Shown here one piece after another: positions 9,734 through 38,893 of a DNA stretch of 64,000 nucleotides. The stretch's first letter is position 1. Each line of letters begins with the position of its first letter. The notes below the pieces were generated by a model that was not told where the DNA came from, did no database searches, and saw nothing but the letters and a program-made list of their open reading frames with translations. A program made the translations under genes and the position numbers. Source of the DNA: Saccostrea echinata (taxonomy: Eukaryota); NCBI RefSeq assembly GCF_033153115.1, contig NW_026889750.1, forward strand, positions 3,844,001-3,908,000. The letters are read 5' to 3'.

Positions 9734-9866
9734 ANNNNNNNNNNNNNNNNNNNNNNNNNNNNNNNNNNNNNNNNNNNNNNNNNNNNNNNNNNNNNNNNNN
9801 NNNNNNNNNNNNNNNNNNNNNNNNNNNNNNNNNNNNNNNNNNNNNNNNNNNNNNNNNNNNNNNNNN
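9734..9866. other. Assembly gap (N run)
   Basis: Run of n characters. Confidence 1.
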
Positions 9867-12219: not shown

Positions 12220-14265
12220 TCAAGGTAGGATATAAGAATTAGCTTGTGTGGCAAAGCATTGCTTTATTGCTTCTTGACAATTATTGATGTCTCTCCATGG
12301 CAGAGAAATGTGAGTCGTCAGGAATTCAAGGTGATTCAATAACATCGTTAATGCAACTGTCATGTCAATTCCTGCAAGCACCTGCTCCAATGCAACGTGA
12401 TATTGGTTGGTTGATTCCTGTAATTCCTTCACAGTTTGAGTCAAGTCTTGCTTTCTGTGGCAGCTTGAACACTCAGAGTCTGAGAGATGTTTGTTAGGCA
12501 AAATGAAAACTGGCCCAGAGCACTCTTCACATTTGAACACAGGGGTGTCATCAGGAATATCAAAGTATAGAGGAAGATCCAATTGACAAGCATCACAATT
12601 GCAATCAAAGTAATACTGTGGTCTTAGTTTTGACCGTCGTTCAGCCCTGGTGGTCAAGGGATAAATTGCTCCATAATTATCAAGGATTTCCTCCCCTTTT
12701 TGAATGGGCTTTATTGCTCTGACAACACAGACATTGCCATAATTGTGTCTAACCACTGAAGGATCACACGAATGGTTGATGAGGCTGAGAAGAGCATAGG
12801 CTCCAGATCCTACCTCCACTGTATTTGTAACAGTGGGGTCCCCTGGCTTCCAGTGAATTTCTGAAATTTCATGGGCATTACAGGGCAACATCTGTATCTG
12901 TCTCAAAATGTGTCCTCCTACATAACACCTTGCATCTTCCTCCTGCTCTGAAGGGCAATTCTTAAAGAAGGGAGTTAACTCAAGACACTTCAATAAATAC
13001 ACTGTCTGAACTGCTTTGTTGAATAAGTCCTCAGGTGTCCTTTTGTCCCCATGGTTCACCAGAGTGTACAAAGCATAATAATCCTCAGAGTCATAACAGC
13101 CATCTTTATTGTACCCTAAGACCTCTGACACATCACCACTGCAAAAGTTACTTCGTTCTTGCATCAGATATGAAAACCCTGCTTTCATCACCATTCGAAG
13201 TGCTAGATGTCCAAGCTTCGATTTCATACTCTGAACATGTCTTATAATTTTACATTCTATTCTGTGATAGTCTGACCATGCTTCCTCCTGACATTGAAGA
13301 GAACAAAAAGCAACATCACAGCACTGTTGACAAGGCACGGGGCACTCGACTCTTGTACTGCAGTGACTACAGTATTCTTGTTCTCTCTCCGAGAGATTTA
13401 CAGATGCGAAAGGTTTCTCCACTGCTATAATTTCTCCAACTTTAATATCAGTGGATGCCATCAGCCCTCGTCCCATTTCAGCACTTTCTCGTAAGGCAAC
13501 TTTAGAACTAGCTGACATGAACACAGGATTTCTTGCCCTTTTATCAATTTGAGGCACATCCAAATGACAATGGATTGATTTCCTACTGCCATCTTCTAGC
13601 TCTTTCTCCAAATCCACATCATAGTCTACACTTTTCACCTCTTTAATCAAACTTTGCAAGTTCTGAGTAAAATGCTCCCTCTTCTTCTCATCAAGAGTGG
13701 AAAACTCTAATGACCTTACAGCTGATTCAAATGACTGCTTTGCCTTGGTAAAGTTGTTCAATTTTCGATGACACTTTCCTTGTCGCTCATGAAGCTTGTA
13801 ATGATTTACTTTGGGGTATCCACAACGGAAAGCAAGTTCTGCATTTTGCAAACAAGCATCGTAGTTGTCAAGATGGAACAAGACTGCTGATCTGTTTGCA
13901 AAAGCATTGGCTAGTTCTAGGTCATTGCTTTCTGTATTAGAATTTGATTGGTCAAAACAATTCATATTTGTCACTGGGGCCTTCAATACACTTGCTGTAT
14001 ACAATTTTAAAGACTTGACATAATTTTTCTTCTGAAAGAATTGGTTTCCTTGAGTCCTGAGTTGACAAGCCTCTTCTGAATTTTTGCTATTATCATATTC
14101 TTCGAGACGTATATGTTTCTGAACAGCTGGTAAGGACAGAACAAAATGCACTCGCTTCTCATTGGTTTTCACCTGTGAAAAATCCTCCATGGTTTTTACA
14201 TATTGTCTGTTCTTCTGCAGGTCCTCTCGTATGGCTTTTTGGATATGCTCCATGTCTACTGGCAT
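12220..14265 (-). CDS. SMYD4: SET and MYND domain-containing protein 4-like lysine methyltransferase, 681 aa, intronless CDS
   Basis: N-terminal TPR region (GNQFFQKKNY...ANRSAVLFHL), SET-N GRGLMAS, MYND finger (CSHC...CQQCCDVAFCSLQC...HRIEC), INHSCDP, DNYG and post-SET FDCNCDAC. A splice acceptor at 14284-14286 lies just upstream of the ATG. Confidence 0.93.
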   Translation of the reverse strand: MPVDMEHIQKAIREDLQKNRQYVKTMEDFSQVKTNEKRVHFVLSLPAVQKHIRLEEYDNSKNSEEACQLRTQGNQFFQKKNYVKSLKLYTASVLKAPVTNMNCFDQSNSNTESNDLELANAFANRSAVLFHLDNYDACLQNAELAFRCGYPKVNHYKLHERQGKCHRKLNNFTKAKQSFESAVRSLEFSTLDEKKREHFTQNLQSLIKEVKSVDYDVDLEKELEDGSRKSIHCHLDVPQIDKRARNPVFMSASSKVALRESAEMGRGLMASTDIKVGEIIAVEKPFASVNLSEREQEYCSHCSTRVECPVPCQQCCDVAFCSLQCQEEAWSDYHRIECKIIRHVQSMKSKLGHLALRMVMKAGFSYLMQERSNFCSGDVSEVLGYNKDGCYDSEDYYALYTLVNHGDKRTPEDLFNKAVQTVYLLKCLELTPFFKNCPSEQEEDARCYVGGHILRQIQMLPCNAHEISEIHWKPGDPTVTNTVEVGSGAYALLSLINHSCDPSVVRHNYGNVCVVRAIKPIQKGEEILDNYGAIYPLTTRAERRSKLRPQYYFDCNCDACQLDLPLYFDIPDDTPVFKCEECSGPVFILPNKHLSDSECSSCHRKQDLTQTVKELQESTNQYHVALEQVLAGIDMTVALTMLLNHLEFLTTHISLPWRDINNCQEAIKQCFATQANSYILP

Positions 14266-29879: not shown

Positions 29880-31010
29880 TAAATGTATTGCTATGGTTTT
29901 CTGCAGCAGTCTCGCAAAGAAATTGAATATACTGGGTGGGACTTCAACCTAATAGTTTTGTATATCTACATATAAATTACATTGAATTTATCACATACAC
30001 ATATGTAGACATCATTGCACATGAATTATTGCATAAATAAATACAAAATGAACATGCATGAATATGTATTAAAAAAAAATGGAATGTACACATGGTTGAC
30101 TATTTAAAGAGCCTTCGATGAATTTCTATAGAGGAATGAGATTCTAATTACTAAAAGTTTCTGATATTTATCTAATTAATTAATGGGTTGGACACTGATT
30201 CTCTGTATCTGTAATAGTTGTTACAAAATTATCGGTAAAATACTGTTTCATTTAATAACAGATTCAATATAATGCAGATGGTATTTAATTCTCTTCGTTT
30301 AATTATTTAAATTAATGCATTCAAATTAATTCAAAAAAACTGAATCATTTGATCAGAAAATATATAAATGACAAGTTTAAATTTTATAACACAGTGTCAC
30401 CATAAACAGTGTGCCTCTTGGCAACTGTGAAAAGCATGGTTTACATCATACTTTTAATTGTGAATTTAATCAAATTGTACAGCAGTAAATTTACATGTAA
30501 TTTTATGAATTTGTTGATTTCTTAAAAAGTTGAAAAAAGGAAATGGTTAAGTTTTTGTGCATATTACATACTGAAACCACATTAGTACCATCAATAAATT
30601 GATAGATTGAGGTACATTGTATCACTAAGAAGTACCATATCATTTCAAAAATACCACTATGGTATCATTCCGTTTCATCCTTAATAGTATCCAACCCTAT
30701 AATACAATAGCAAATAATAGTTGACGAGTACTGATATCAAATATATATACATGTACTTGGATATGCATACCAGTAATTAAAATGTGAATATAATTTTAAG
30801 GGAAGAATAAAAACGATCTTATACTTTAAACAATGTGTTCCAAACCAGTCAAAGGTCTTCCCCTAAAAACACTGCTTCCATAGACTTTAAAAGAATACAA
30901 GAATTTTTATAATCATTACATGGCATTTTTTCCTACCCATTAACAATCTGATGAAAAGTGGAACTTTTTACATTATAGTTATTTCTTCAACAAATACAAA
31001 TTAAACAATT

Positions 31011-34000
31011 TTACAGAGCATTATCGTCGTCATGGAAGTCTGTCTCTTCTTCGTCCCTCTGGAACGGCAGGCGGAGACCTTTATTTCGCATTCTCTTCCT
31101 CATAAGGCCACAGCCCACTGCAAACCCCAACAGACTCCCCAGGATGAAACAGCCCACACTAATACCGGCCACAGTACCGGCCATGTTTAGATTGTGTTCC
31201 TGTATCTCTCCTTCACTGAATAAACTGTGGAGGATCCAATTCCATTCTGTATCATCTTCCACACCTTTTCTGGACAGGTCATCTCCTGTCCAAATGACCA
31301 TTCCTGTAAACATTAATAATACTTCCTGTGAACATTAATAAGACATGTACTTATCACTGAAAATTGCTACCAACTATAATTTAATGTTTTGCGCACTTTT
31401 AAAATTAGCAATAAACATTAAATGTGAGTAATAGATGTTTGTAAACACTTTTTATGTCTGTATGTAGCTCTCAATAAAATCATTCTATGTGTAAATAGGA
31501 TTAATAGCATCTATCACTCTATGCCATATTTGTAAATATGTGTGAAGAAATGTTTGAAAACTGTGCACTTATCTTTTCCCAAAAGATCATGTTTGTCAAA
31601 AATTAGAACTGTATCATCTTTCTTAAATTATGTTTCTGAATAATAATTTTGCAGAATGGTCAATTACTATGAACTCTGACCTTTTCAATCTTTGTTTATG
31701 ACCTTTCCACTCTTGCTAAATAGGGAATATAAATTTTTATTACTCTGTAAACTCTTTTTGTCTCAGACATTTTAAAAGCAGCTCTTTTGGTAAAATAAAT
31801 TTTGTTCCACTCCCTTAACAAAACGTAGCACACTATAATGGCTGATTTTAATCAAAATGGATCTGCCTCTAAACATGCTGAGAATGGAAAGGAACTTTAA
31901 TACAATGCATAAAATCTAAATACTGGTACATGTATTTTAAAATTCAGAAATTATGTCACAAATTGTGCAAGTTCATAAAAAGAACACTGACATTTTGTTA
32001 TGTGTAATTTTTTGATGTGCAAAAATAAAAAACAAAAAAAACAAACAAAATACATGATGAATCAGTGCATTTCAGTTGGAACGATCATGTCCTTGTTAAC
32101 AAATTAATATACATATCCTGTGTGTGTCACAGTGACAATAGCAGAGCAATGGCAGAGAAGATAGAGGTGATGGATTCAATATCCTAAACTGAACCAAAGA
32201 TGGGTCATGAACTCCTTTGGTTAGAAACCCCAGATGCTTATTACTTAGGGAAATGTACTTAAGATGGGAAAGATCATTGATTTTACCTTTAAACTGCATG
32301 GATCTGATGTACATGTACTTGTCTAGTAGACTATCATGCCCTTCGTACCACAACTGATGCTGTACATGATTTATCTACAATAATGAAACCTTTGAAGATA
32401 TTTTGGCTGTACCCAAGTTTTGTTTATAAGCACTCTAGTTACTTTTCATAATCATTTTCACAAAGCCGAGTCCATGCAACTTTAGTAACAAAAACACTTA
32501 ACTTATTCCCTCCCATTTCACCCTGGAGTATTTTTTTTCAATTCAAAAACGACAAGAGTTGGGTCAAGTGGATAAACTAGATTTATCAACAACAAAAAAA
32601 ATAAAAAAAAGAAACCATATTCTTAATTCTGTACAAATAATACAGTTTTATACCTAAGTTTTACTTTGAAACTTGCCTAATGGAAATAATGGGATGTTAC
32701 AGAAGCACTTACCATTATATTAATGTAGTCAGATCTATAAATAGGATGATAGTGGTGTGCCTTGGCATTCCTATACTGTTCAGAATAGTTGCCTTTTATC
32801 TCTGCTAGGCTGATTTTCTTCCTTTTAGATGTATCACAGGTACTGCTGTCATTTTTCTTGTCGAAATAACAGGTCAATGCTTCTTTACCTCCAGTCTTTT
32901 TCTAAAAATACAAAAACAAAAAAAAATTACATACGGTGGATTTATGACCAACTTTGATTTAAAACTTGTAGTTTAAAACTTTCTTTTTTTTTAAAGTAGT
33001 TTATAGGTCAAATTAAAGGTCACTAAGTCGGTAAGCCTGTCAGAAAGCTAACTAAAGTGCATACTATCAAACACTGGTCTCATATTGTTCTAAAGGTTTA
33101 GGGCAAAGATTGATTTTTCAAAGAAAATCACATACAGTAAAACTTTTTTCTTAAGAACAGGGATAACAACAAATTTACAGATACATGTATACAGTGAAGT
33201 TTTTTTGGAATCCATGGCAAAAACAATTCCTTGTGAAATTTTCCAGTTATAACAAACTTTGAATAACAAATTTACGCACATAGCGAACTGATTTTGTGTC
33301 CAAATAGAGATTAAAACAACCATATTTACATCTTCTAGAACAAATTTTTAAAGTTCTAAAAATTGAAAAAATTTAATTGACTGTTACGCATGCAAACACT
33401 CAATCACCCACCCACACATACAAGTCCATTACTATATCCCCTCCGACTTCATTACAAAGGCATAAAAAAGAAGGAGGCTAACTCTAGGGGTGAAACGATA
33501 CAACTCCTTCACGGTTCGATACGTATTGTATAATTTTTGTCTTGGTATGGTTATTTTCGATACGATACATTTTGATAGATGGAAACAAATACCTTGTTTT
33601 ATGCTTTCTTTTACTAAATCTAGTACCTTTATCTATGAATTTTTATTAGCAAATTGACTATAAGAAATTGATTAGAATTATTTGACTGTCGAAAACTATT
33701 TTACAGACTATCAGTCATCAAAAATTTACGTTTTCTATACTTATTTATACTGAGTAACGTGTTTTACCTTATGCCAAACCTGACTGAATAACGATCCCAA
33801 CCGAAAAATGAACCGTACCGAAAATTAGAGATCTTGCACCGTGTATCAAACCGAGAAAAAATACCGCGTTGAATCGATACCTCGGTGAACCGTTTCACTC
33901 CTAGCTAACTCTACCCCTTCTAAAAAAGGATAAAAATATCATTTCTAGAAACATCACATTACCATAACCTGTTTCTATCAATAAGAATGTACATCAATCA

Positions 34001-37000
34001 TTGGATTTAAAAAACAGAACACACCTGGATGGTAGAATTACTACAGGTGTAATCATAGCCATGCCAAGGAATTCCAATCAACAGCTTGTCTGGAGAAATG
34101 CCATGATCAATGTATTCTTCTACACCTGAAAGAATAAATAAAGCTTGTTGAACTAATAGATGGATTTTCAATCCTGGTTGGCATAGTATTTCATGAACTT
34201 CATGAAACACCTATCAATATTTATACAAAAATAAGTAAAATACTTAAATAAATTATCATTTATAACAGATACATGTATGAACACTATCAAAATTTGACAC
34301 CTTTTCTGCCTGAATACTAGGTATGTTTAAAATATGTATAATAGCAATCACTGTGATCAAGGAGAAAACCTAATATTTCATAATTTTTGCCATTGTGACA
34401 TATCTCAAGCACTGCCCATTTGATTTTTGTTCTCTTTTTGAGATGCAAAAAAATTACCGGTATATATTATTAATTTCTTTTGATTGAATTAAAGAAAAAT
34501 ATCAGAGAGGGAGATGTATCGTATTGTATAACAATTTAGTTCTGTTATTAAATTAAAACAATTGTCATAGAGATGATGACCTGGCAGAAAGGATAACTCA
34601 GGGTATACAGTTAACTTTTACAAGAAAATCAAACGGTACTGGCAAGACTGGTGAAATATTAATATGTAAAATAGTACAATAAAACAAGCAGAGTTTTCTA
34701 GACAAATCTTTTTATAATTATTTCATTTTTCACTGGGATCAAAAATGTAAGTGTAACCTGATCTAACACATTGATAAAACAAAAAACTTAAGCAAACATG
34801 ATTGAATAAAATGTTCAGATATCCTTCAAAAATAGTTTTGCTTCATTTGAACTTAAGAGATATTTTTTCCATGACCAGTTGGGCTACTTTGATGTCGAAT
34901 AAACTAGAACATCTTTTACTTCTCTGAGTCAGTCAGACAAGCCTTATGTTAAGCACCTGACCTTATTCCATTTCATTATAAAGGAAGGCAATATTAGAAT
35001 TCACCAACTTTTTCCATTTCACAATATTGTACCAAACGTCATTAATGAAGGCAAAATACTTACCATACACCAAGCTTGTCATTGGCATAGTGGCTTTGGC
35101 AATGCAGTTTGTATTGGTATCACATGTGAAAAAGCTTTCAGGACTGGTGATAAAAGCAACACAATGCTCGGTCAAATACTTGGCTAAGCTACAGTCACCA
35201 TTGTAACAGGGAGGTTTGTATGGAACAATACATAGCAGCTACAGAGGAAATTATACCAGTTTAAAAAAGCAGTAGGTTTATGTATAAGAAGTGCTTCTAT
35301 AATGTTTTGTGTAAATAGCAAATATTCAATCTATATTTGTGTAATACCTCTAATATAGCATTTTAGAAGATATGTATCATGTATTAAAATTTAGAACTTT
35401 TAAAAATATACTGTAATTTTTGACATGTTAAATTATATGCTTCCTCATCTCTCTGACTAGAAATTTAAATTACAATGATCACAACCTTAATAACAAAAAA
35501 ATTGACATTCTTACCTCAGCACTGTGAGGAAAAAAATAATTTTTAACCATATATGTCAACAATCCCAGTACTTCCTGAACATGGGTGCTATCAGCAGTAC
35601 ACTGTCCCAACAGATCTAGCAAATCTAGTGCTACATAATCTACGTAAAGCAGATCCCTCTTGGCAGCGACCGTATTCAGCCACTTCTGTAGTCTGGGATC
35701 CGAAGTATTTGTTATAACTGGTACCTTTTCTGAAATTATTATATTAAAAACAGTTTTCGTACGTTTTCAACTACAAGGCTTTGCAATATATATAATAATC
35801 AACTCACTAGAAATTTTCAATTAAAGGATTTTTGAACAAATTAACATTTTATTTTAGTGAAATTACCAATAAATGCAAAGTTGGCTTTATTTTTGTGAGC
35901 AGTGCACATCAGCTTTTGAGCAGTACGATTCGGGACATCCTTTGTAGCAATGACTGTAGTAATCTGGGACCAAGGCCATTTTGTATGGTCTGATGTGCCT
36001 TCTGCAACAACTACTTTCTGTAATGAGATTAAAAAAAACAATGACTATATTTCAAGAAAAAAAATTCCTATATTTAATCATTTTTTAAATGATTAATGAC
36101 CTACAATTTTACTTCATAAATCAAGAGTCAGTGAATGAAACTAAAGTTTCCTTTGAAAGGACTATACATGTGAAAAAATCATCCAGCATTATTTAAAAAG
36201 CAATTATGTCCTTTTAAATATGGCTTTTTCTAGTTTTGCAATAAAACCAAAGGAAGTTACATTATTACATGAAACTTTGCTTACATTGTTACATAAATAA
36301 AACAAACCAAGCTAAATTTGGTCATAATCTCCATGTAAGAGTGTATTAAATTACTATTTGATAAATATACTTTTGGTCACCAAACTGCAAAGAATTTTTG
36401 TAAATTTTCTTAGCACAAAAATATTTAAACTATTTCATTAAATAATTTCAAACCAATGTGATTCATGTAATTTAGCAACACATTTCTATGTAACTAATTC
36501 TCCACTATCCATCAAAGGAATGACCGATTCTTTTTTTTTCTTCAACATGTTCAATCAATCTCCTTCTAATTTTGTAGATAATGAAATGATAAGGTCTACC
36601 CCTCTGAACTATAGTATAGAGGATAGACCTATGTACAGTAAAACAAGCTTATAATGAATTGACACTTATAGTGAAGTGATTTTTCATTCCCTGTGACTTT
36701 AAAATATTATAATCTTAAGGGATATAACGAATTACGCTGATAATGTAGCAAAGTTGGCAATTTGTTATAAGCGTGTTTAACTGTATACTTATCATCTACA
36801 AAACTAGATGGGGAGCACCTACTGTAAACCAACTTTTATTCGCGTGCAAGAAATGTCCGTGAGTTTCGCGACCAACTTTAACTCACGAATATTAATCGCT
36901 GCAAACCATTTTAATCTGCTTTTTATTTGTAGAGAATGTTCCTCCATCGCGAAAATGAATCGTCGAATCGGGAATAAAAGTTGACGCGAATAATAGTTGG

Positions 37001-38511
37001 TTTACAGTATATGTATGTGTAAAATATATTTCCCTTGGTTGCCATCTTTGGGGAAAAACCATAAAATTCTCACATTAGCCTTTGCAACTTTAAGGTTTGT
37101 AACTTTGTCATTTGACTTGAAAATAATTGTTGGATCTTGTATATTGATTGCCCCAGGATGGGGCTATACCCATACACTGAAAGAAAATATATGTTAACAA
37201 TGGCAGCCAATTAATCACAGCATGCCCAAATATTTGGTAGTGTAAAGTGCTTTTTCCCCTATTGACCTCTTGGTTGACCCCACAAAGGGAAACAACTTTT
37301 GCAAAGTGTAGCTTGGACTATAACAATCTCCCTTGCAGAGTTGTAGTTCATTTCTCTCTCAGACACCTCTGCATTATGCAAGTTTCAAGATAGAGGCACA
37401 AAAAGTATCCATATCAGCATGGAAGTGGGACAGGTTGTCCATATCCATATACACAAACGTGCATAATGAATGTCGTTTTCATTTAAGAGGATATCTGAAT
37501 ATTTACATGTTTGACTTTATTTCTTGTAACCTTTAATTAAAGTTCAAAATATTGATCTTATAATCCATTGTATGCCACCGAATTAATTTGATAATTGATA
37601 GTAAATATGGTCCGATTTTGCAATACTAGTCACAAATCAGTTGCTTTATATAGTCCCTAACCTTTTTCGGCTTTAAATACAGAGTCTCTCAACAGATGGA
37701 GACCACTAGATTTTCTGACCTCAGCATAAATTTGCATGTTAAATGAGCTATCTGTTTACTTTACCGACTGACCAATCAGTTGAATGAGTGGCAATGCAAT
37801 ATGGGCTACAACAACTTTCAGTACAAACACAGAGTATTGAAGATATTCAAGATAAAGAGCAATTTTAATTTTCCCATGAAAGATCATTTCAACTCTTTTT
37901 TTATAACATATTTTATTATGTACTGATTGGTAATAATTCAGTACAATGTGAAGTAATCATAGATGTACATGCCTCACAGTTACCAATACAGTGGAATTAT
38001 ATCTTTTGCTTACAAGCGTTCAAAAGCAGCAATGTTTAAAACGATGTTTGAAACAGATTGCTTTTTTGAAAGTCCATAGTACAAAGTAGTAACATACTTG
38101 CAATTTTAATAGACTAAAACAGATTTATCGAACTATTCTGAATAGTTTGATAAAACTATATAGCTAATTCAAGCTATAAAGCTAAAACAGGAAATTGTGC
38201 CATGGACCTGTTTTAGGACTACATCTTCACTGCATTGTGATATTTGTTTAAATCATAGGTATGGTTACATTTTCTTTTCATGCGGTCTCGAAAAAAAGTG
38301 AATGGACATTAAAACCATTCCCCTTCAAAAGAAAACAAAAATAATTAGAACAAACCTCTTCATTGTACTCAAATTTATGCACTCTGCAATAAACTGGGTC
38401 ACACGGACAATCATGATGGATATTGTACTTCACAGCAGAATCAGATGAAATCCCCGATATGAACAGTAAAACATGTACACATAAAGTTAATTTTATCCAT
38501 GAAACCCTCAT
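31011..38511 (-). CDS. Di-N-acetylchitobiase (CTBS, GH18)-like protein, predicted catalytically inactive, type I membrane protein; 8 exons, 455 aa with first exon 1b
   Basis: Exons 38511-38356, 36017-35867, 35729-35515, 35238-35064, 34125-34025, 32901-32713, 32374-32287, 31303-31011 join in frame. CTBS-like motifs CPCDPVYC, WSQITTV, LMCTAHK, SPDKLLIGIPWHGYDYTC, HQLWYE and GMVIW. Signal peptide plus C-terminal hydrophobic helix. Confidence 0.88.
33485..33903. mobile_element. hAT-like MITE with 8-bp TSD
   Basis: taggggtgaaacg ... cgtttcactccta; GCTAACTC at 33477-33484 and 33904-33911; subterminal cgatac motifs. Confidence 0.85.
36636..37007. mobile_element. Two adjacent Tc1/mariner-like MITEs (36636-36783 and 36822-37007)
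   Basis: TA-flanked TIRs cagtaaaaca...tgtttaactg and ctgtaaaccaact...agttggtttacag. Confidence 0.7.
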
Positions 38512-38755
38512 TGTTTTAGTTATGATATCATACGAGTTTGAAGAGAATTATAAACAGTTCAGTGTAGTGACAGTGTACACAAATCAAGAAGCTAGGGACA
38601 TTTAGTCATACTTCCGGAATCACCGATTGTCTTCAATTCGTACAAGATTTATTCGTCTTCAGAAACTCTGACTATTCCAATAATATTTTGTCTAAAAAAA
38701 TATCTTAAAGATTCACAGATGATTCCCAAAACATTTAAAAAACAAAGTTACATAC

Positions 38756-38893
38756 CTCCCTGCTGAACTTCCTTATCTCTTTAGAACAAAGACTAGAGTC
38801 GGAACACACGCATGATTTTACTTTTCTGGTCTTTGAACACGTAAATGAAATTATGAAAATGAAAACAAGTGTCAGCAAACTTGGAAAGCGCAT
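38756..38893 (-). CDS. Alternative first coding exon (1a) of the CTBS-like gene
   Basis: MRFPSLLTLVFIFIISFTCSKTRKVKSCVCSDSSLCSKEIRKFSRE followed by a phase-0 gtatgt donor. Signal peptide plus CxCxxxxxC, parallel to exon 1b and to the CTBS N-terminus. Confidence 0.7.

Follow-up and report, generated by a model that had tools for sequence, protein, structure and literature searches.

A 64,000-nucleotide stretch of the genome of the oyster Saccostrea echinata (positions 3844001-3908000 of contig NW_026889750.1, hereafter the window) carries on its minus strand, at window positions 31011-38893, a gene related to di-N-acetylchitobiase (CTBS) in which a leucine occupies the position of the catalytic glutamate of GH18 hydrolases and a transmembrane (TM) helix with a cytoplasmic tail follows the last helix of the barrel. 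The product is very probably a type I membrane glycoprotein with a CTBS-branch GH18 ectodomain, which has lost the catalytic acid, gained a TM helix and a tail, and is both expressed and conserved. When a role as a membrane lectin or receptor is added, the statement as a whole has about an even chance of being right. An earlier note on this DNA had proposed a catalytically dead, membrane-anchored chitobiase paralog, and the protein strings that it quoted were each found on the minus strand. In presenting the gene as unannotated it overstated the case: RefSeq already models the gene, under an enzyme-like name.

Gene structure, isoforms and transcription

The exon set was derived from six-frame translation and inspection of splice sites in this AT-rich genome (assembly of 923 Mb). 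The span covers nine exons, two of which are alternative first exons, and thus yields both annotated isoforms. Joined with the first exon E1a, the exons reproduce letter for letter (tblastn and a scripted join) the protein P0013, which is RefSeq XP_061174413.1, "di-N-acetylchitobiase-like isoform X2" of Saccostrea echinata, 449 aa. P0013 was retrieved by an exon-3 search of a representative protein library, followed by a word search with the best full-length match. The features of the gene are as follows, AF2 denoting the AlphaFold2 model of the protein.

38756..38893, minus strand: E1a, alternative first exon of isoform X2; ATG at 38893, signal peptide and CVCSDSSLC, phase-0 GT donor at 38755
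38356..38511, minus strand: E1b, alternative first exon of isoform X1; ATG at 38511, signal peptide and CPCDPVYCRVHKFEYNEE, phase-0 donor
35867..36017, minus strand: E2, barrel strands beta-1 and beta-2 with KVVVAEG, WSQITTV and LMCTAH; RNA joint 35729/35867
35515..35729, minus strand: E3, helix and strand beta-4 with the degenerate active-site motif; RNA joints 35238/35515 and 35729/35867
35617..35640, minus strand: active-site motif, codons 127-134, DYVALDLL, at the GH18 DxxDxDxE position; Leu134 codon at 35617-35619
35064..35238, minus strand: E4, strands beta-5 and beta-6; Cys-rich, with TSPE at the end of beta-6; RNA joints
34025..34125, minus strand: E5, beta-7 region, LLIGIPWHGYDYTC, containing PWHGYDY; RNA contig
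32713..32901, minus strand: E6, alpha+beta insertion region of the GH18 domain; RNA joint 32374/32713
32287..32374, minus strand: E6b, 88 nt, INHVQHQLWYEGHDSLLDKYMYIRSMQFK, equal to P0013 residues 324-353; RNA joints 31302/32286 and 32374/32713
31011..31303, minus strand: E7, last exon; beta-8 (GMVIW), last barrel helix (EWNWILHSLF), 10-residue linker, TM helix and tail; stop codon 31011-31013
31101..31181, minus strand: TM helix, residues 394-420, from hydropathy, the AF2 helix and family conservation
31014..31100, minus strand: cytoplasmic tail, residues 421-449; RKRMRNK stop-transfer, LPFQRD, acidic run and C-terminal FHDDDNAL
30700..31010, minus strand: 3' untranslated region (UTR), from the 2540-nt contig of run X5, which continues for ~855 nt below 30700

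On the minus strand E3 contains QKWLNTVAAKRDLLYVDYVALDLLDLLGQC, and E7 also encodes the hydrophobic helix AGTVAGISVGCFILGSLLGFAVGCGLM, RKRMRNK and DEEETDFHDDDNAL. The 449-codon frame is intact and the splice sites are all canonical. The 455-aa model of the earlier note equals isoform X1 (P0019, RefSeq XP_061174409.1), the product of E1b, and to that extent it stood; its exon list has to be amended by the 88-nt E6b, which lies between the late exons of that model, and by the second first exon within the span. E6b is needed because without its 88 nt the frame of E7 hits a stop before the TM helix.

The two isoforms differ only by their first exon. E1a (P0013 residues 1-46, matched at 100% identity by tblastn) and E1b each have their own ATG, signal peptide, CxC...C motif and phase-0 donor, so that in the mature ectodomain X1 and X2 diverge over the opening ~20 residues. 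Across genera the mature segment of the E1b type (CPCDPVYCRVHKF) is far better kept than its E1a counterpart.

The gene is expressed as spliced RNA that includes the TM exon, contrary to the outcome (a TM-coding exon left unjoined) that the earlier note had named as a refutation. Five sequencing runs carry 14-18% of the gene's sampled words, approximately the share expected of mature mRNA, and contigs of four runs were placed over 30700-36699. Contigs of three of them, X2, X4 and X5, from two studies and under two organism labels, contain the joints 31302/32286, 32374/32713, 34123/35062, 35238/35515 and 35729/35867; the contig joints have CT..AC ends, equivalent to GT..AG on the gene strand, at all introns from E2 to E7. 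The 2540-nt contig of run X5 passes through the 3' UTR, E7, E6b, E6, E5, E4, E3 and E2 and extends 160 nt into a first exon. Contigs reach 155-160 nt past E2, a length compatible with either first exon, both of which end in ...GAG. Though the type of the runs was merely guessed to be RNA, spliced contigs can only derive from transcripts. Seven exonic single-nucleotide polymorphisms are listed from the RNA contigs, four synonymous and the others R>K, T>K and V>I, a pattern that fits purifying selection in a small sample (n=7).

The introns of the gene contain high-copy repeats. One of ~420 bp at 33485-33903, in the intron between E5 and E6, has 'gctaactcta' on both sides and near-complementary ends (gggtgaaacg / cgtttcactcc); RNA contig depth there is 10-50x that of the gene's exons, and its two limits, 33485 and 33903, are precisely where contigs break. 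The repeat resembles a transcribed, high-copy element of the miniature inverted-repeat transposable element type, and an inverted-repeat scan of this intronic repeat reported none. In the intron between the first exons and E2, the edge of a high-copy repeat lies at 36641-36699, where many contigs of all four runs end at 36641-36648 and 36683 with divergent flanks.

Active site and fold

The GH18 motif is represented in this protein by DYVALDLL, with Leu134 at the position of the catalytic Glu. Local alignment, BLASTP and mafft (addfragments) all place YLDGINIDFE of the canonical CTBS from the same genome over YVDYVALDLL without a gap, so that D127 and D132 each face a D, A130 an N and L134 the catalytic E. 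The acid position was mapped through this nearest paralog because the Pfam and PDB profiles reach only the C-terminal half. In the AF2 model residues 128-132 form a strand and L134 comes directly after beta-4, where GH18 enzymes carry the acid. The Glu-to-Leu exchange read by the earlier note is thus borne out by three alignment methods and by its place in the model. For comparison we used a family set of ten sequences, P0013 and nine full-length relatives:

P0014: S. cucullata
P0012: C. virginica
P0003 and P0011: oyster-like, from Logan assemblies; P0011 represents a cluster of 199 sequences
P0010: scallop-like, from a Logan assembly, source unrecorded
P0016: Mizuhopecten yessoensis (scallop)
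P0015: Tegillarca granosa (ark shell)
P0018: Mercenaria mercenaria (hard clam)
P0017: Gigantopelta aegis (gastropod)

The acid position is aliphatic in all ten (L in eight, I in one and V in one), and no acidic neighbour of residue 134 is conserved among them, residue 135 being D in Saccostrea and K, Q or S elsewhere. With Leu134 in place of the catalytic Glu, the site is predicted, from sequence and model, to be dead. A second catalytic element, MSYD, seems to have been lost too: at the end of beta-6 (residues 194-199 in the AF2 model) T-S-P-E stands at the place of the M-S-Y-D of CTBS, and P201 does not vary in the family. This equivalence was drawn from the position of the strand because E4 does not align with the paralog. 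PWHGYDY, the beta-8 motif GxVIW/Y and D127 are kept throughout the family; D132 is kept in eight members, and the remaining two have Asn.

The fold is that of GH18. Pfam PF00704 (GH18) matches P0013 with 38.0 bits, the cut-off being 29.6, and aligns residues 223-358 with profile positions 204-313; against PDB sequence profiles the C-terminal half alone matches. When single exons were scanned against Pfam, E5 alone matched GH18, and weakly, exon-wise scans being too insensitive here. The AF2 model (predicted local distance difference test, pLDDT, 77.2; predicted template modelling score, pTM, 0.72) is a (beta/alpha)8 barrel with an alpha+beta insertion. Foldseek relates it with probability 1.00 and a target TM-score (template modelling) of up to 0.65 to GH18 chitinases and chi-lectins, its neighbours comprising plant, fungal, insect and bacterial chitinases, goat, sheep and bovine CHI3L1 homologues, and YKL-39. 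An hhalign comparison of the family with a small profile of the N-terminal halves of this genome's chitinases paired the helix and strand that precede beta-8 with the elements ahead of beta-4, with a probability of 1.6%, and was rejected as spurious.

Membrane anchor, tail and topology

The predicted features of the protein support a type I topology, as the earlier note had read it: a signal peptide, one TM helix towards the C-terminus and a positive inside flank. All ten sequences begin with a hydrophobic signal and have one TM helix, after which the flank carries a net charge of +4 to +7. In P0013 the Kyte-Doolittle 19-residue peak is 2.18, the AF2 model has a helix at 393-426, and small residues are spaced along the TM segment in the pattern A394 G395 xx A398 G399 xx V402 G403 C404 F405 xx G408 xxx G412 xxxx C417; a pattern of this glycine-zipper type recurs in all ten sequences. 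The linker between barrel and TM helix has ~10 residues and low model confidence. The five sequons named in the earlier note are all present (NRT76, NTS104, NST256, NDS277 and NYS298), and that at N104 is kept in seven of the ten sequences (five oysters, P0010 and P0015), a recurrence that fits a luminal or extracellular ectodomain.

The tail has the same form in all ten sequences, a basic stretch followed by (R/A/L/K)PFxxD, an acidic run, [FY][HT]DD... and a C-terminal L, and P432, F433, D436, D444, D445 and L449 are invariant. Neither a donor nor a second copy of the exon for TM helix and tail was detectable in the oyster's own genome, where searches with E2 and with the last exon match this gene alone, and a search of a protein atlas with linker, TM helix and tail gave no usable match.

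Conservation across molluscs

Bivalves and at least one gastropod share the whole architecture, with its Glu loss, TM helix and tail; the earlier note had asked of orthologs that they share the Glu loss and the TM helix, and they do so from oysters to the gastropod. Identity of the nine relatives to P0013 runs from 84% down to 32%. In the protein atlas P0013 falls into a cluster of 64 in which Mollusca is the most frequent phylum, and a word search with the ten-sequence alignment gave nothing new among the matches listed. The X1/X2 isoform pair is common to Saccostrea echinata, S. cucullata and Crassostrea virginica, and E1a-type N-termini are present in S. cucullata, C. virginica, P0003 and P0011. 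Conservation is unevenly distributed along the protein: mean identity between oyster and non-oyster sequences is 0.49 in the TM helix, 0.40 in the tail, 0.33 in the ectodomain, 0.14 in the linker and 0.11 in the signal peptide. Since the TM helix is the best-conserved region of the protein, the anchor is probably not merely passive.

Relation to the canonical CTBS

The canonical CTBS of the genome lies outside the window, on contig C9 at 33889340-33897984 (loci L046/L045). Its N-terminal part contains a signal peptide, CACPCEYKQQC, WSKVTTV, LMCFAHKHG and NYLDGINIDFE, and its middle and C-terminal part VTVDVAWSP...FLFIMSYDEQSQ, LGVPWYGYIY and YQIWYDDPESLVLKY...RGVGMWNAD; it has MSYDEQSQ and PWYGYIY and ends in ...KKMWDALPVY without a TM helix. 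It is apparently soluble and active. Its last exon is unsplit where the dead paralog has the intron between E6b and E7, and a repeat-rich region of ~6 kb lies between its exon 6 and the last exon.

Searched against the genome, the family profile finds, besides its own gene, two collinear weak exon matches on C9 (E = 0.002), and it matches none of ~79 chitinase-like exons in the genome; the canonical CTBS locus is thus the one place elsewhere in the genome that it finds, which upholds the placement in the CTBS branch proposed earlier. The dead paralog shares with CTBS, in the same order, a signal peptide followed by CxC...C, W-S-x-(I/V)-T-T-V, LMCxAH and (G)xPW(H/Y)GY, and also QxWY(E/D)xxxSLxxKY and G-x-x-x-W. 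E2 aligns with exon 2 of the canonical paralog, E5 is the exon best conserved relative to it, and the introns after exons 2 and 3 appear coincident, as read from exon ends with the splice sites of the paralog unmapped. It differs from CTBS in the Glu-to-Leu exchange in DxxDxDxE, in TSPE for MSYD (by strand position), in extra conserved cysteines, in its two alternative first exons, and in the linker, TM helix and acidic tail that stand where CTBS stops after the last barrel helix. The gene is very probably a CTBS-branch GH18 paralog that arose by duplication of the canonical soluble CTBS. The predicted protein fails both the catalytic motif and the solubility of CTBS and is on these grounds not to be filed as a chitobiase.

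Proposed function and alternatives

CTBS is a GH18 reducing-end exo-hydrolase. With its acid gone, the substrate-assisted hydrolysis of GH18 enzymes would be impossible in the dead paralog, and the protein would bind rather than cut. The ectodomain would serve as a non-catalytic binding module, most probably for glycans containing N-acetylglucosamine (GlcNAc), either chito-oligosaccharides or the chitobiose core at the reducing end of N-glycans; this ligand class is favoured because PWHGYDY, the beta-8 motif, D127 and, in eight of ten sequences, D132 are retained. The barrel would be held ~10 residues from the membrane with its cleft facing away from the bilayer, given the short linker and the general topology of triosephosphate isomerase (TIM) barrels, in which the last helix ends opposite the cleft. 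The TM helix, glycine-zipper-like, may mediate helix-helix association, and the tail, with its PFxxD, acidic cluster and C-terminal Leu, may contact the cytosolic sorting machinery. That TM helix and tail are better conserved than the ectodomain would argue for a receptor or cargo-sorting role in the secretory and endolysosomal system, not for a passive tether; the endolysosomal route is a reasonable guess in view of the lysosomal ancestor. In its most far-reaching form, a tentative and rather doubtful one, the proposal would be that these proteins form an unrecognised class of molluscan transmembrane glycan receptors built on a dead chitobiase, which capture chito-oligosaccharides or free N-glycan cores at the cell's surface or in endosomes and couple this through TM helix and tail to oligomerisation, endocytic sorting or signalling. 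On that proposal they would parallel chitin-sensing receptors, in animals and with an origin of their own, and would be the first chi-lectins of the CTBS branch.

Several observations weigh against the preferred reading. The similarity of exon 3 to the paralog is weak when taken alone (z = 2.4 against shuffles, BLASTP E = 0.62), the pairing being supported beyond this score by the clearly homologous exons that flank it. The N-terminal half falls below the thresholds of the Pfam and PDB GH18 profiles, and the pairwise alignment of E4 with exon 4 of the paralog is not significant (z = -1.3); the E4 cysteines C171, C179, C184, C194 and C213 are conserved across the family and new relative to CTBS. 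In two distant members Tyr takes the place of the beta-8 Trp, and the earlier claim that the late binding-site Trp is kept therefore holds for GMVIW of this gene and not for the whole family. The tail has no exact YxxPhi, DxxLL or [DE]xxxL[LI] sorting motif. Because the beta-5/beta-6 region has diverged, with TSPE and new cysteines, retention of the GlcNAc pocket is not to be assumed; the -1 subsite looks remodelled, the ancestral pocket may have disappeared, and a protein could be the ligand instead.

Two alternatives accept the loss of catalysis and differ in what the protein would do. Lysosomal acid phosphatase, ACP2, is made as a type I membrane precursor, and the anchored protein might likewise be a delivery form, routed to the lysosome by TM helix and tail and then clipped, so that the luminal domain would act beside CTBS as a soluble non-catalytic protein with glycan-binding or chaperone-like properties. 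The lysosomal location of the ancestor CTBS (PMC1945033), the acidic, conserved tail, and a short linker whose poor conservation (0.14) and low model confidence would suit a cleavage site are in its favour. The TM helix, in contrast, is the most conserved segment and has an ordered small-residue pattern, which is unexpected for a disposable anchor, and no cleavage motif is recognisable in the protein; we consider a delivery form unlikely. A glycan-binding receptor or sorting protein, the reading preferred here, also competes with a pseudoenzyme whose remodelled cleft binds protein, whether to regulate or inhibit another hydrolase, in adhesion or as a co-receptor, much as some relatives of GH18 in plants have turned into xylanase inhibitors. 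The strong divergence and the new, disulfide-capable conserved cysteines around beta-5/beta-6, the loss of the catalytic Glu together with the apparent loss of Tyr and Asp of MSYD, and an N-terminal half that stays under the GH18 profile thresholds would all suit a protein binder; the kept PWHGYDY, beta-8 motif, D127 and D132 (eight of ten) fit a retained sugar-binding floor instead, and we would give a protein ligand a similarly low chance.

An enzyme that works through another acid or mechanism is highly improbable. The RefSeq name (di-N-acetylchitobiase-like) implies one, Asp135 stands next to Leu134 in Saccostrea, and a molluscan GH18 survey treats the chitobiase group as active (PMC7560691). 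However, the acid position is always aliphatic, other members have K, Q or S at residue 135 with no alternative acid conserved, and the motif logo of the survey, LDGxNxDxE, fits the canonical paralog and not the dead family. Genes of this clade are counted as active di-N-acetylchitobiases in annotation and in GH18 surveys (PMC7560691), and the active label is probably wrong for them. An annotation artefact or decaying pseudogene can be dismissed almost entirely, given the intact 449-codon frame, canonical splice sites, spliced transcripts in two studies and orthologs from Ostreidae to Gastropoda.

Molluscs build and remodel chitin, in shell and radula, and meet chitin-bearing food and pathogens. 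If the preferred reading, a glycan-binding membrane protein, is true, a receptor for chitin fragments or for the N-glycan core would be relevant to immunity, digestion and biomineralisation. With TM helix and tail in hand, a receptor or sorting function is directly testable.

Other features of the window and the genome

At 12220-14265 on the minus strand an uninterrupted open reading frame of 681 aa has SET, zf-MYND and TPR matches and lies in the most GC-rich 2-kb bin of the window (0.40); its domains make it look like a SMYD-type lysine methyltransferase gene or a retrocopy of one, intronless at this place. A run of 132 N at 9735-9866 is an assembly gap or masked sequence. A tRNA scan found nothing. 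Outside the window, at C60:5477043-5496712 and C34:4349556-4363930, lie two tandem arrays of near-identical GH18 chitinase copies with ~1.89 kb spacing and identical scores, which may reflect recent tandem expansion or else duplication, in the assembly, between the two contigs.

Comparison with known systems

CTBS itself is lysosomal (PMC1945033), and CHID1 is a GH18-like, non-catalytic protein tied, as is proposed for the dead paralog, to the endolysosomal route (PMC1945033). Compared by description, CHID1 differs in being soluble and sorted by a separate receptor; it was not among the top 49 Foldseek matches.

Cg-Chit and Ca-Chit are atypical oyster GH18 chitinases with a C-terminal TM anchor, in which, as in the dead paralog, a GH18 ectodomain is held by a single TM helix (PMC4457423). 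These chitinase-branch proteins exceed 1000 aa, carry a Thr-rich stalk and two catalytic sites, both intact, and are regarded as active (PMC4457423). The dead paralog, in contrast, has ~450 aa, a single, degenerate site and a 10-residue linker, and its tail is unrelated to theirs. A full-text literature search found no description of a catalytically dead, membrane-anchored chitobiase; the gene models are already public, and the reading of the protein as dead and anchored appears new.

Oysters also have soluble chitinase-like proteins, and the GH18 pseudoenzymes known as chi-lectins are important factors in immunity and tissue remodelling. CHI3L1 carries Leu in place of the catalytic Glu, the same exchange as in P0013, and the well-known chi-lectins are, to our knowledge, all soluble and chitinase-derived. 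The oyster protein resembles the chi-lectins (CHI3L1/YKL-40, CHI3L2, Ym1, the insect IDGFs and oyster Cg-Clp1/2) in combining a GH18 barrel with a non-acidic residue in place of the Glu. It departs from these secreted, chitinase-branch proteins in its descent from chitobiase and in its membrane anchor and conserved cytoplasmic tail, and its carbohydrate binding is putative. Judged by this branch placement, the loss of the acid on a kept fold is convergent and of separate origin from the chi-lectin clade. Should the proposed function prove true, a GH18 lectin-like protein would have arisen a second time, independently, from chitobiase, and for the first time with a TM helix and cytoplasmic tail of its own.

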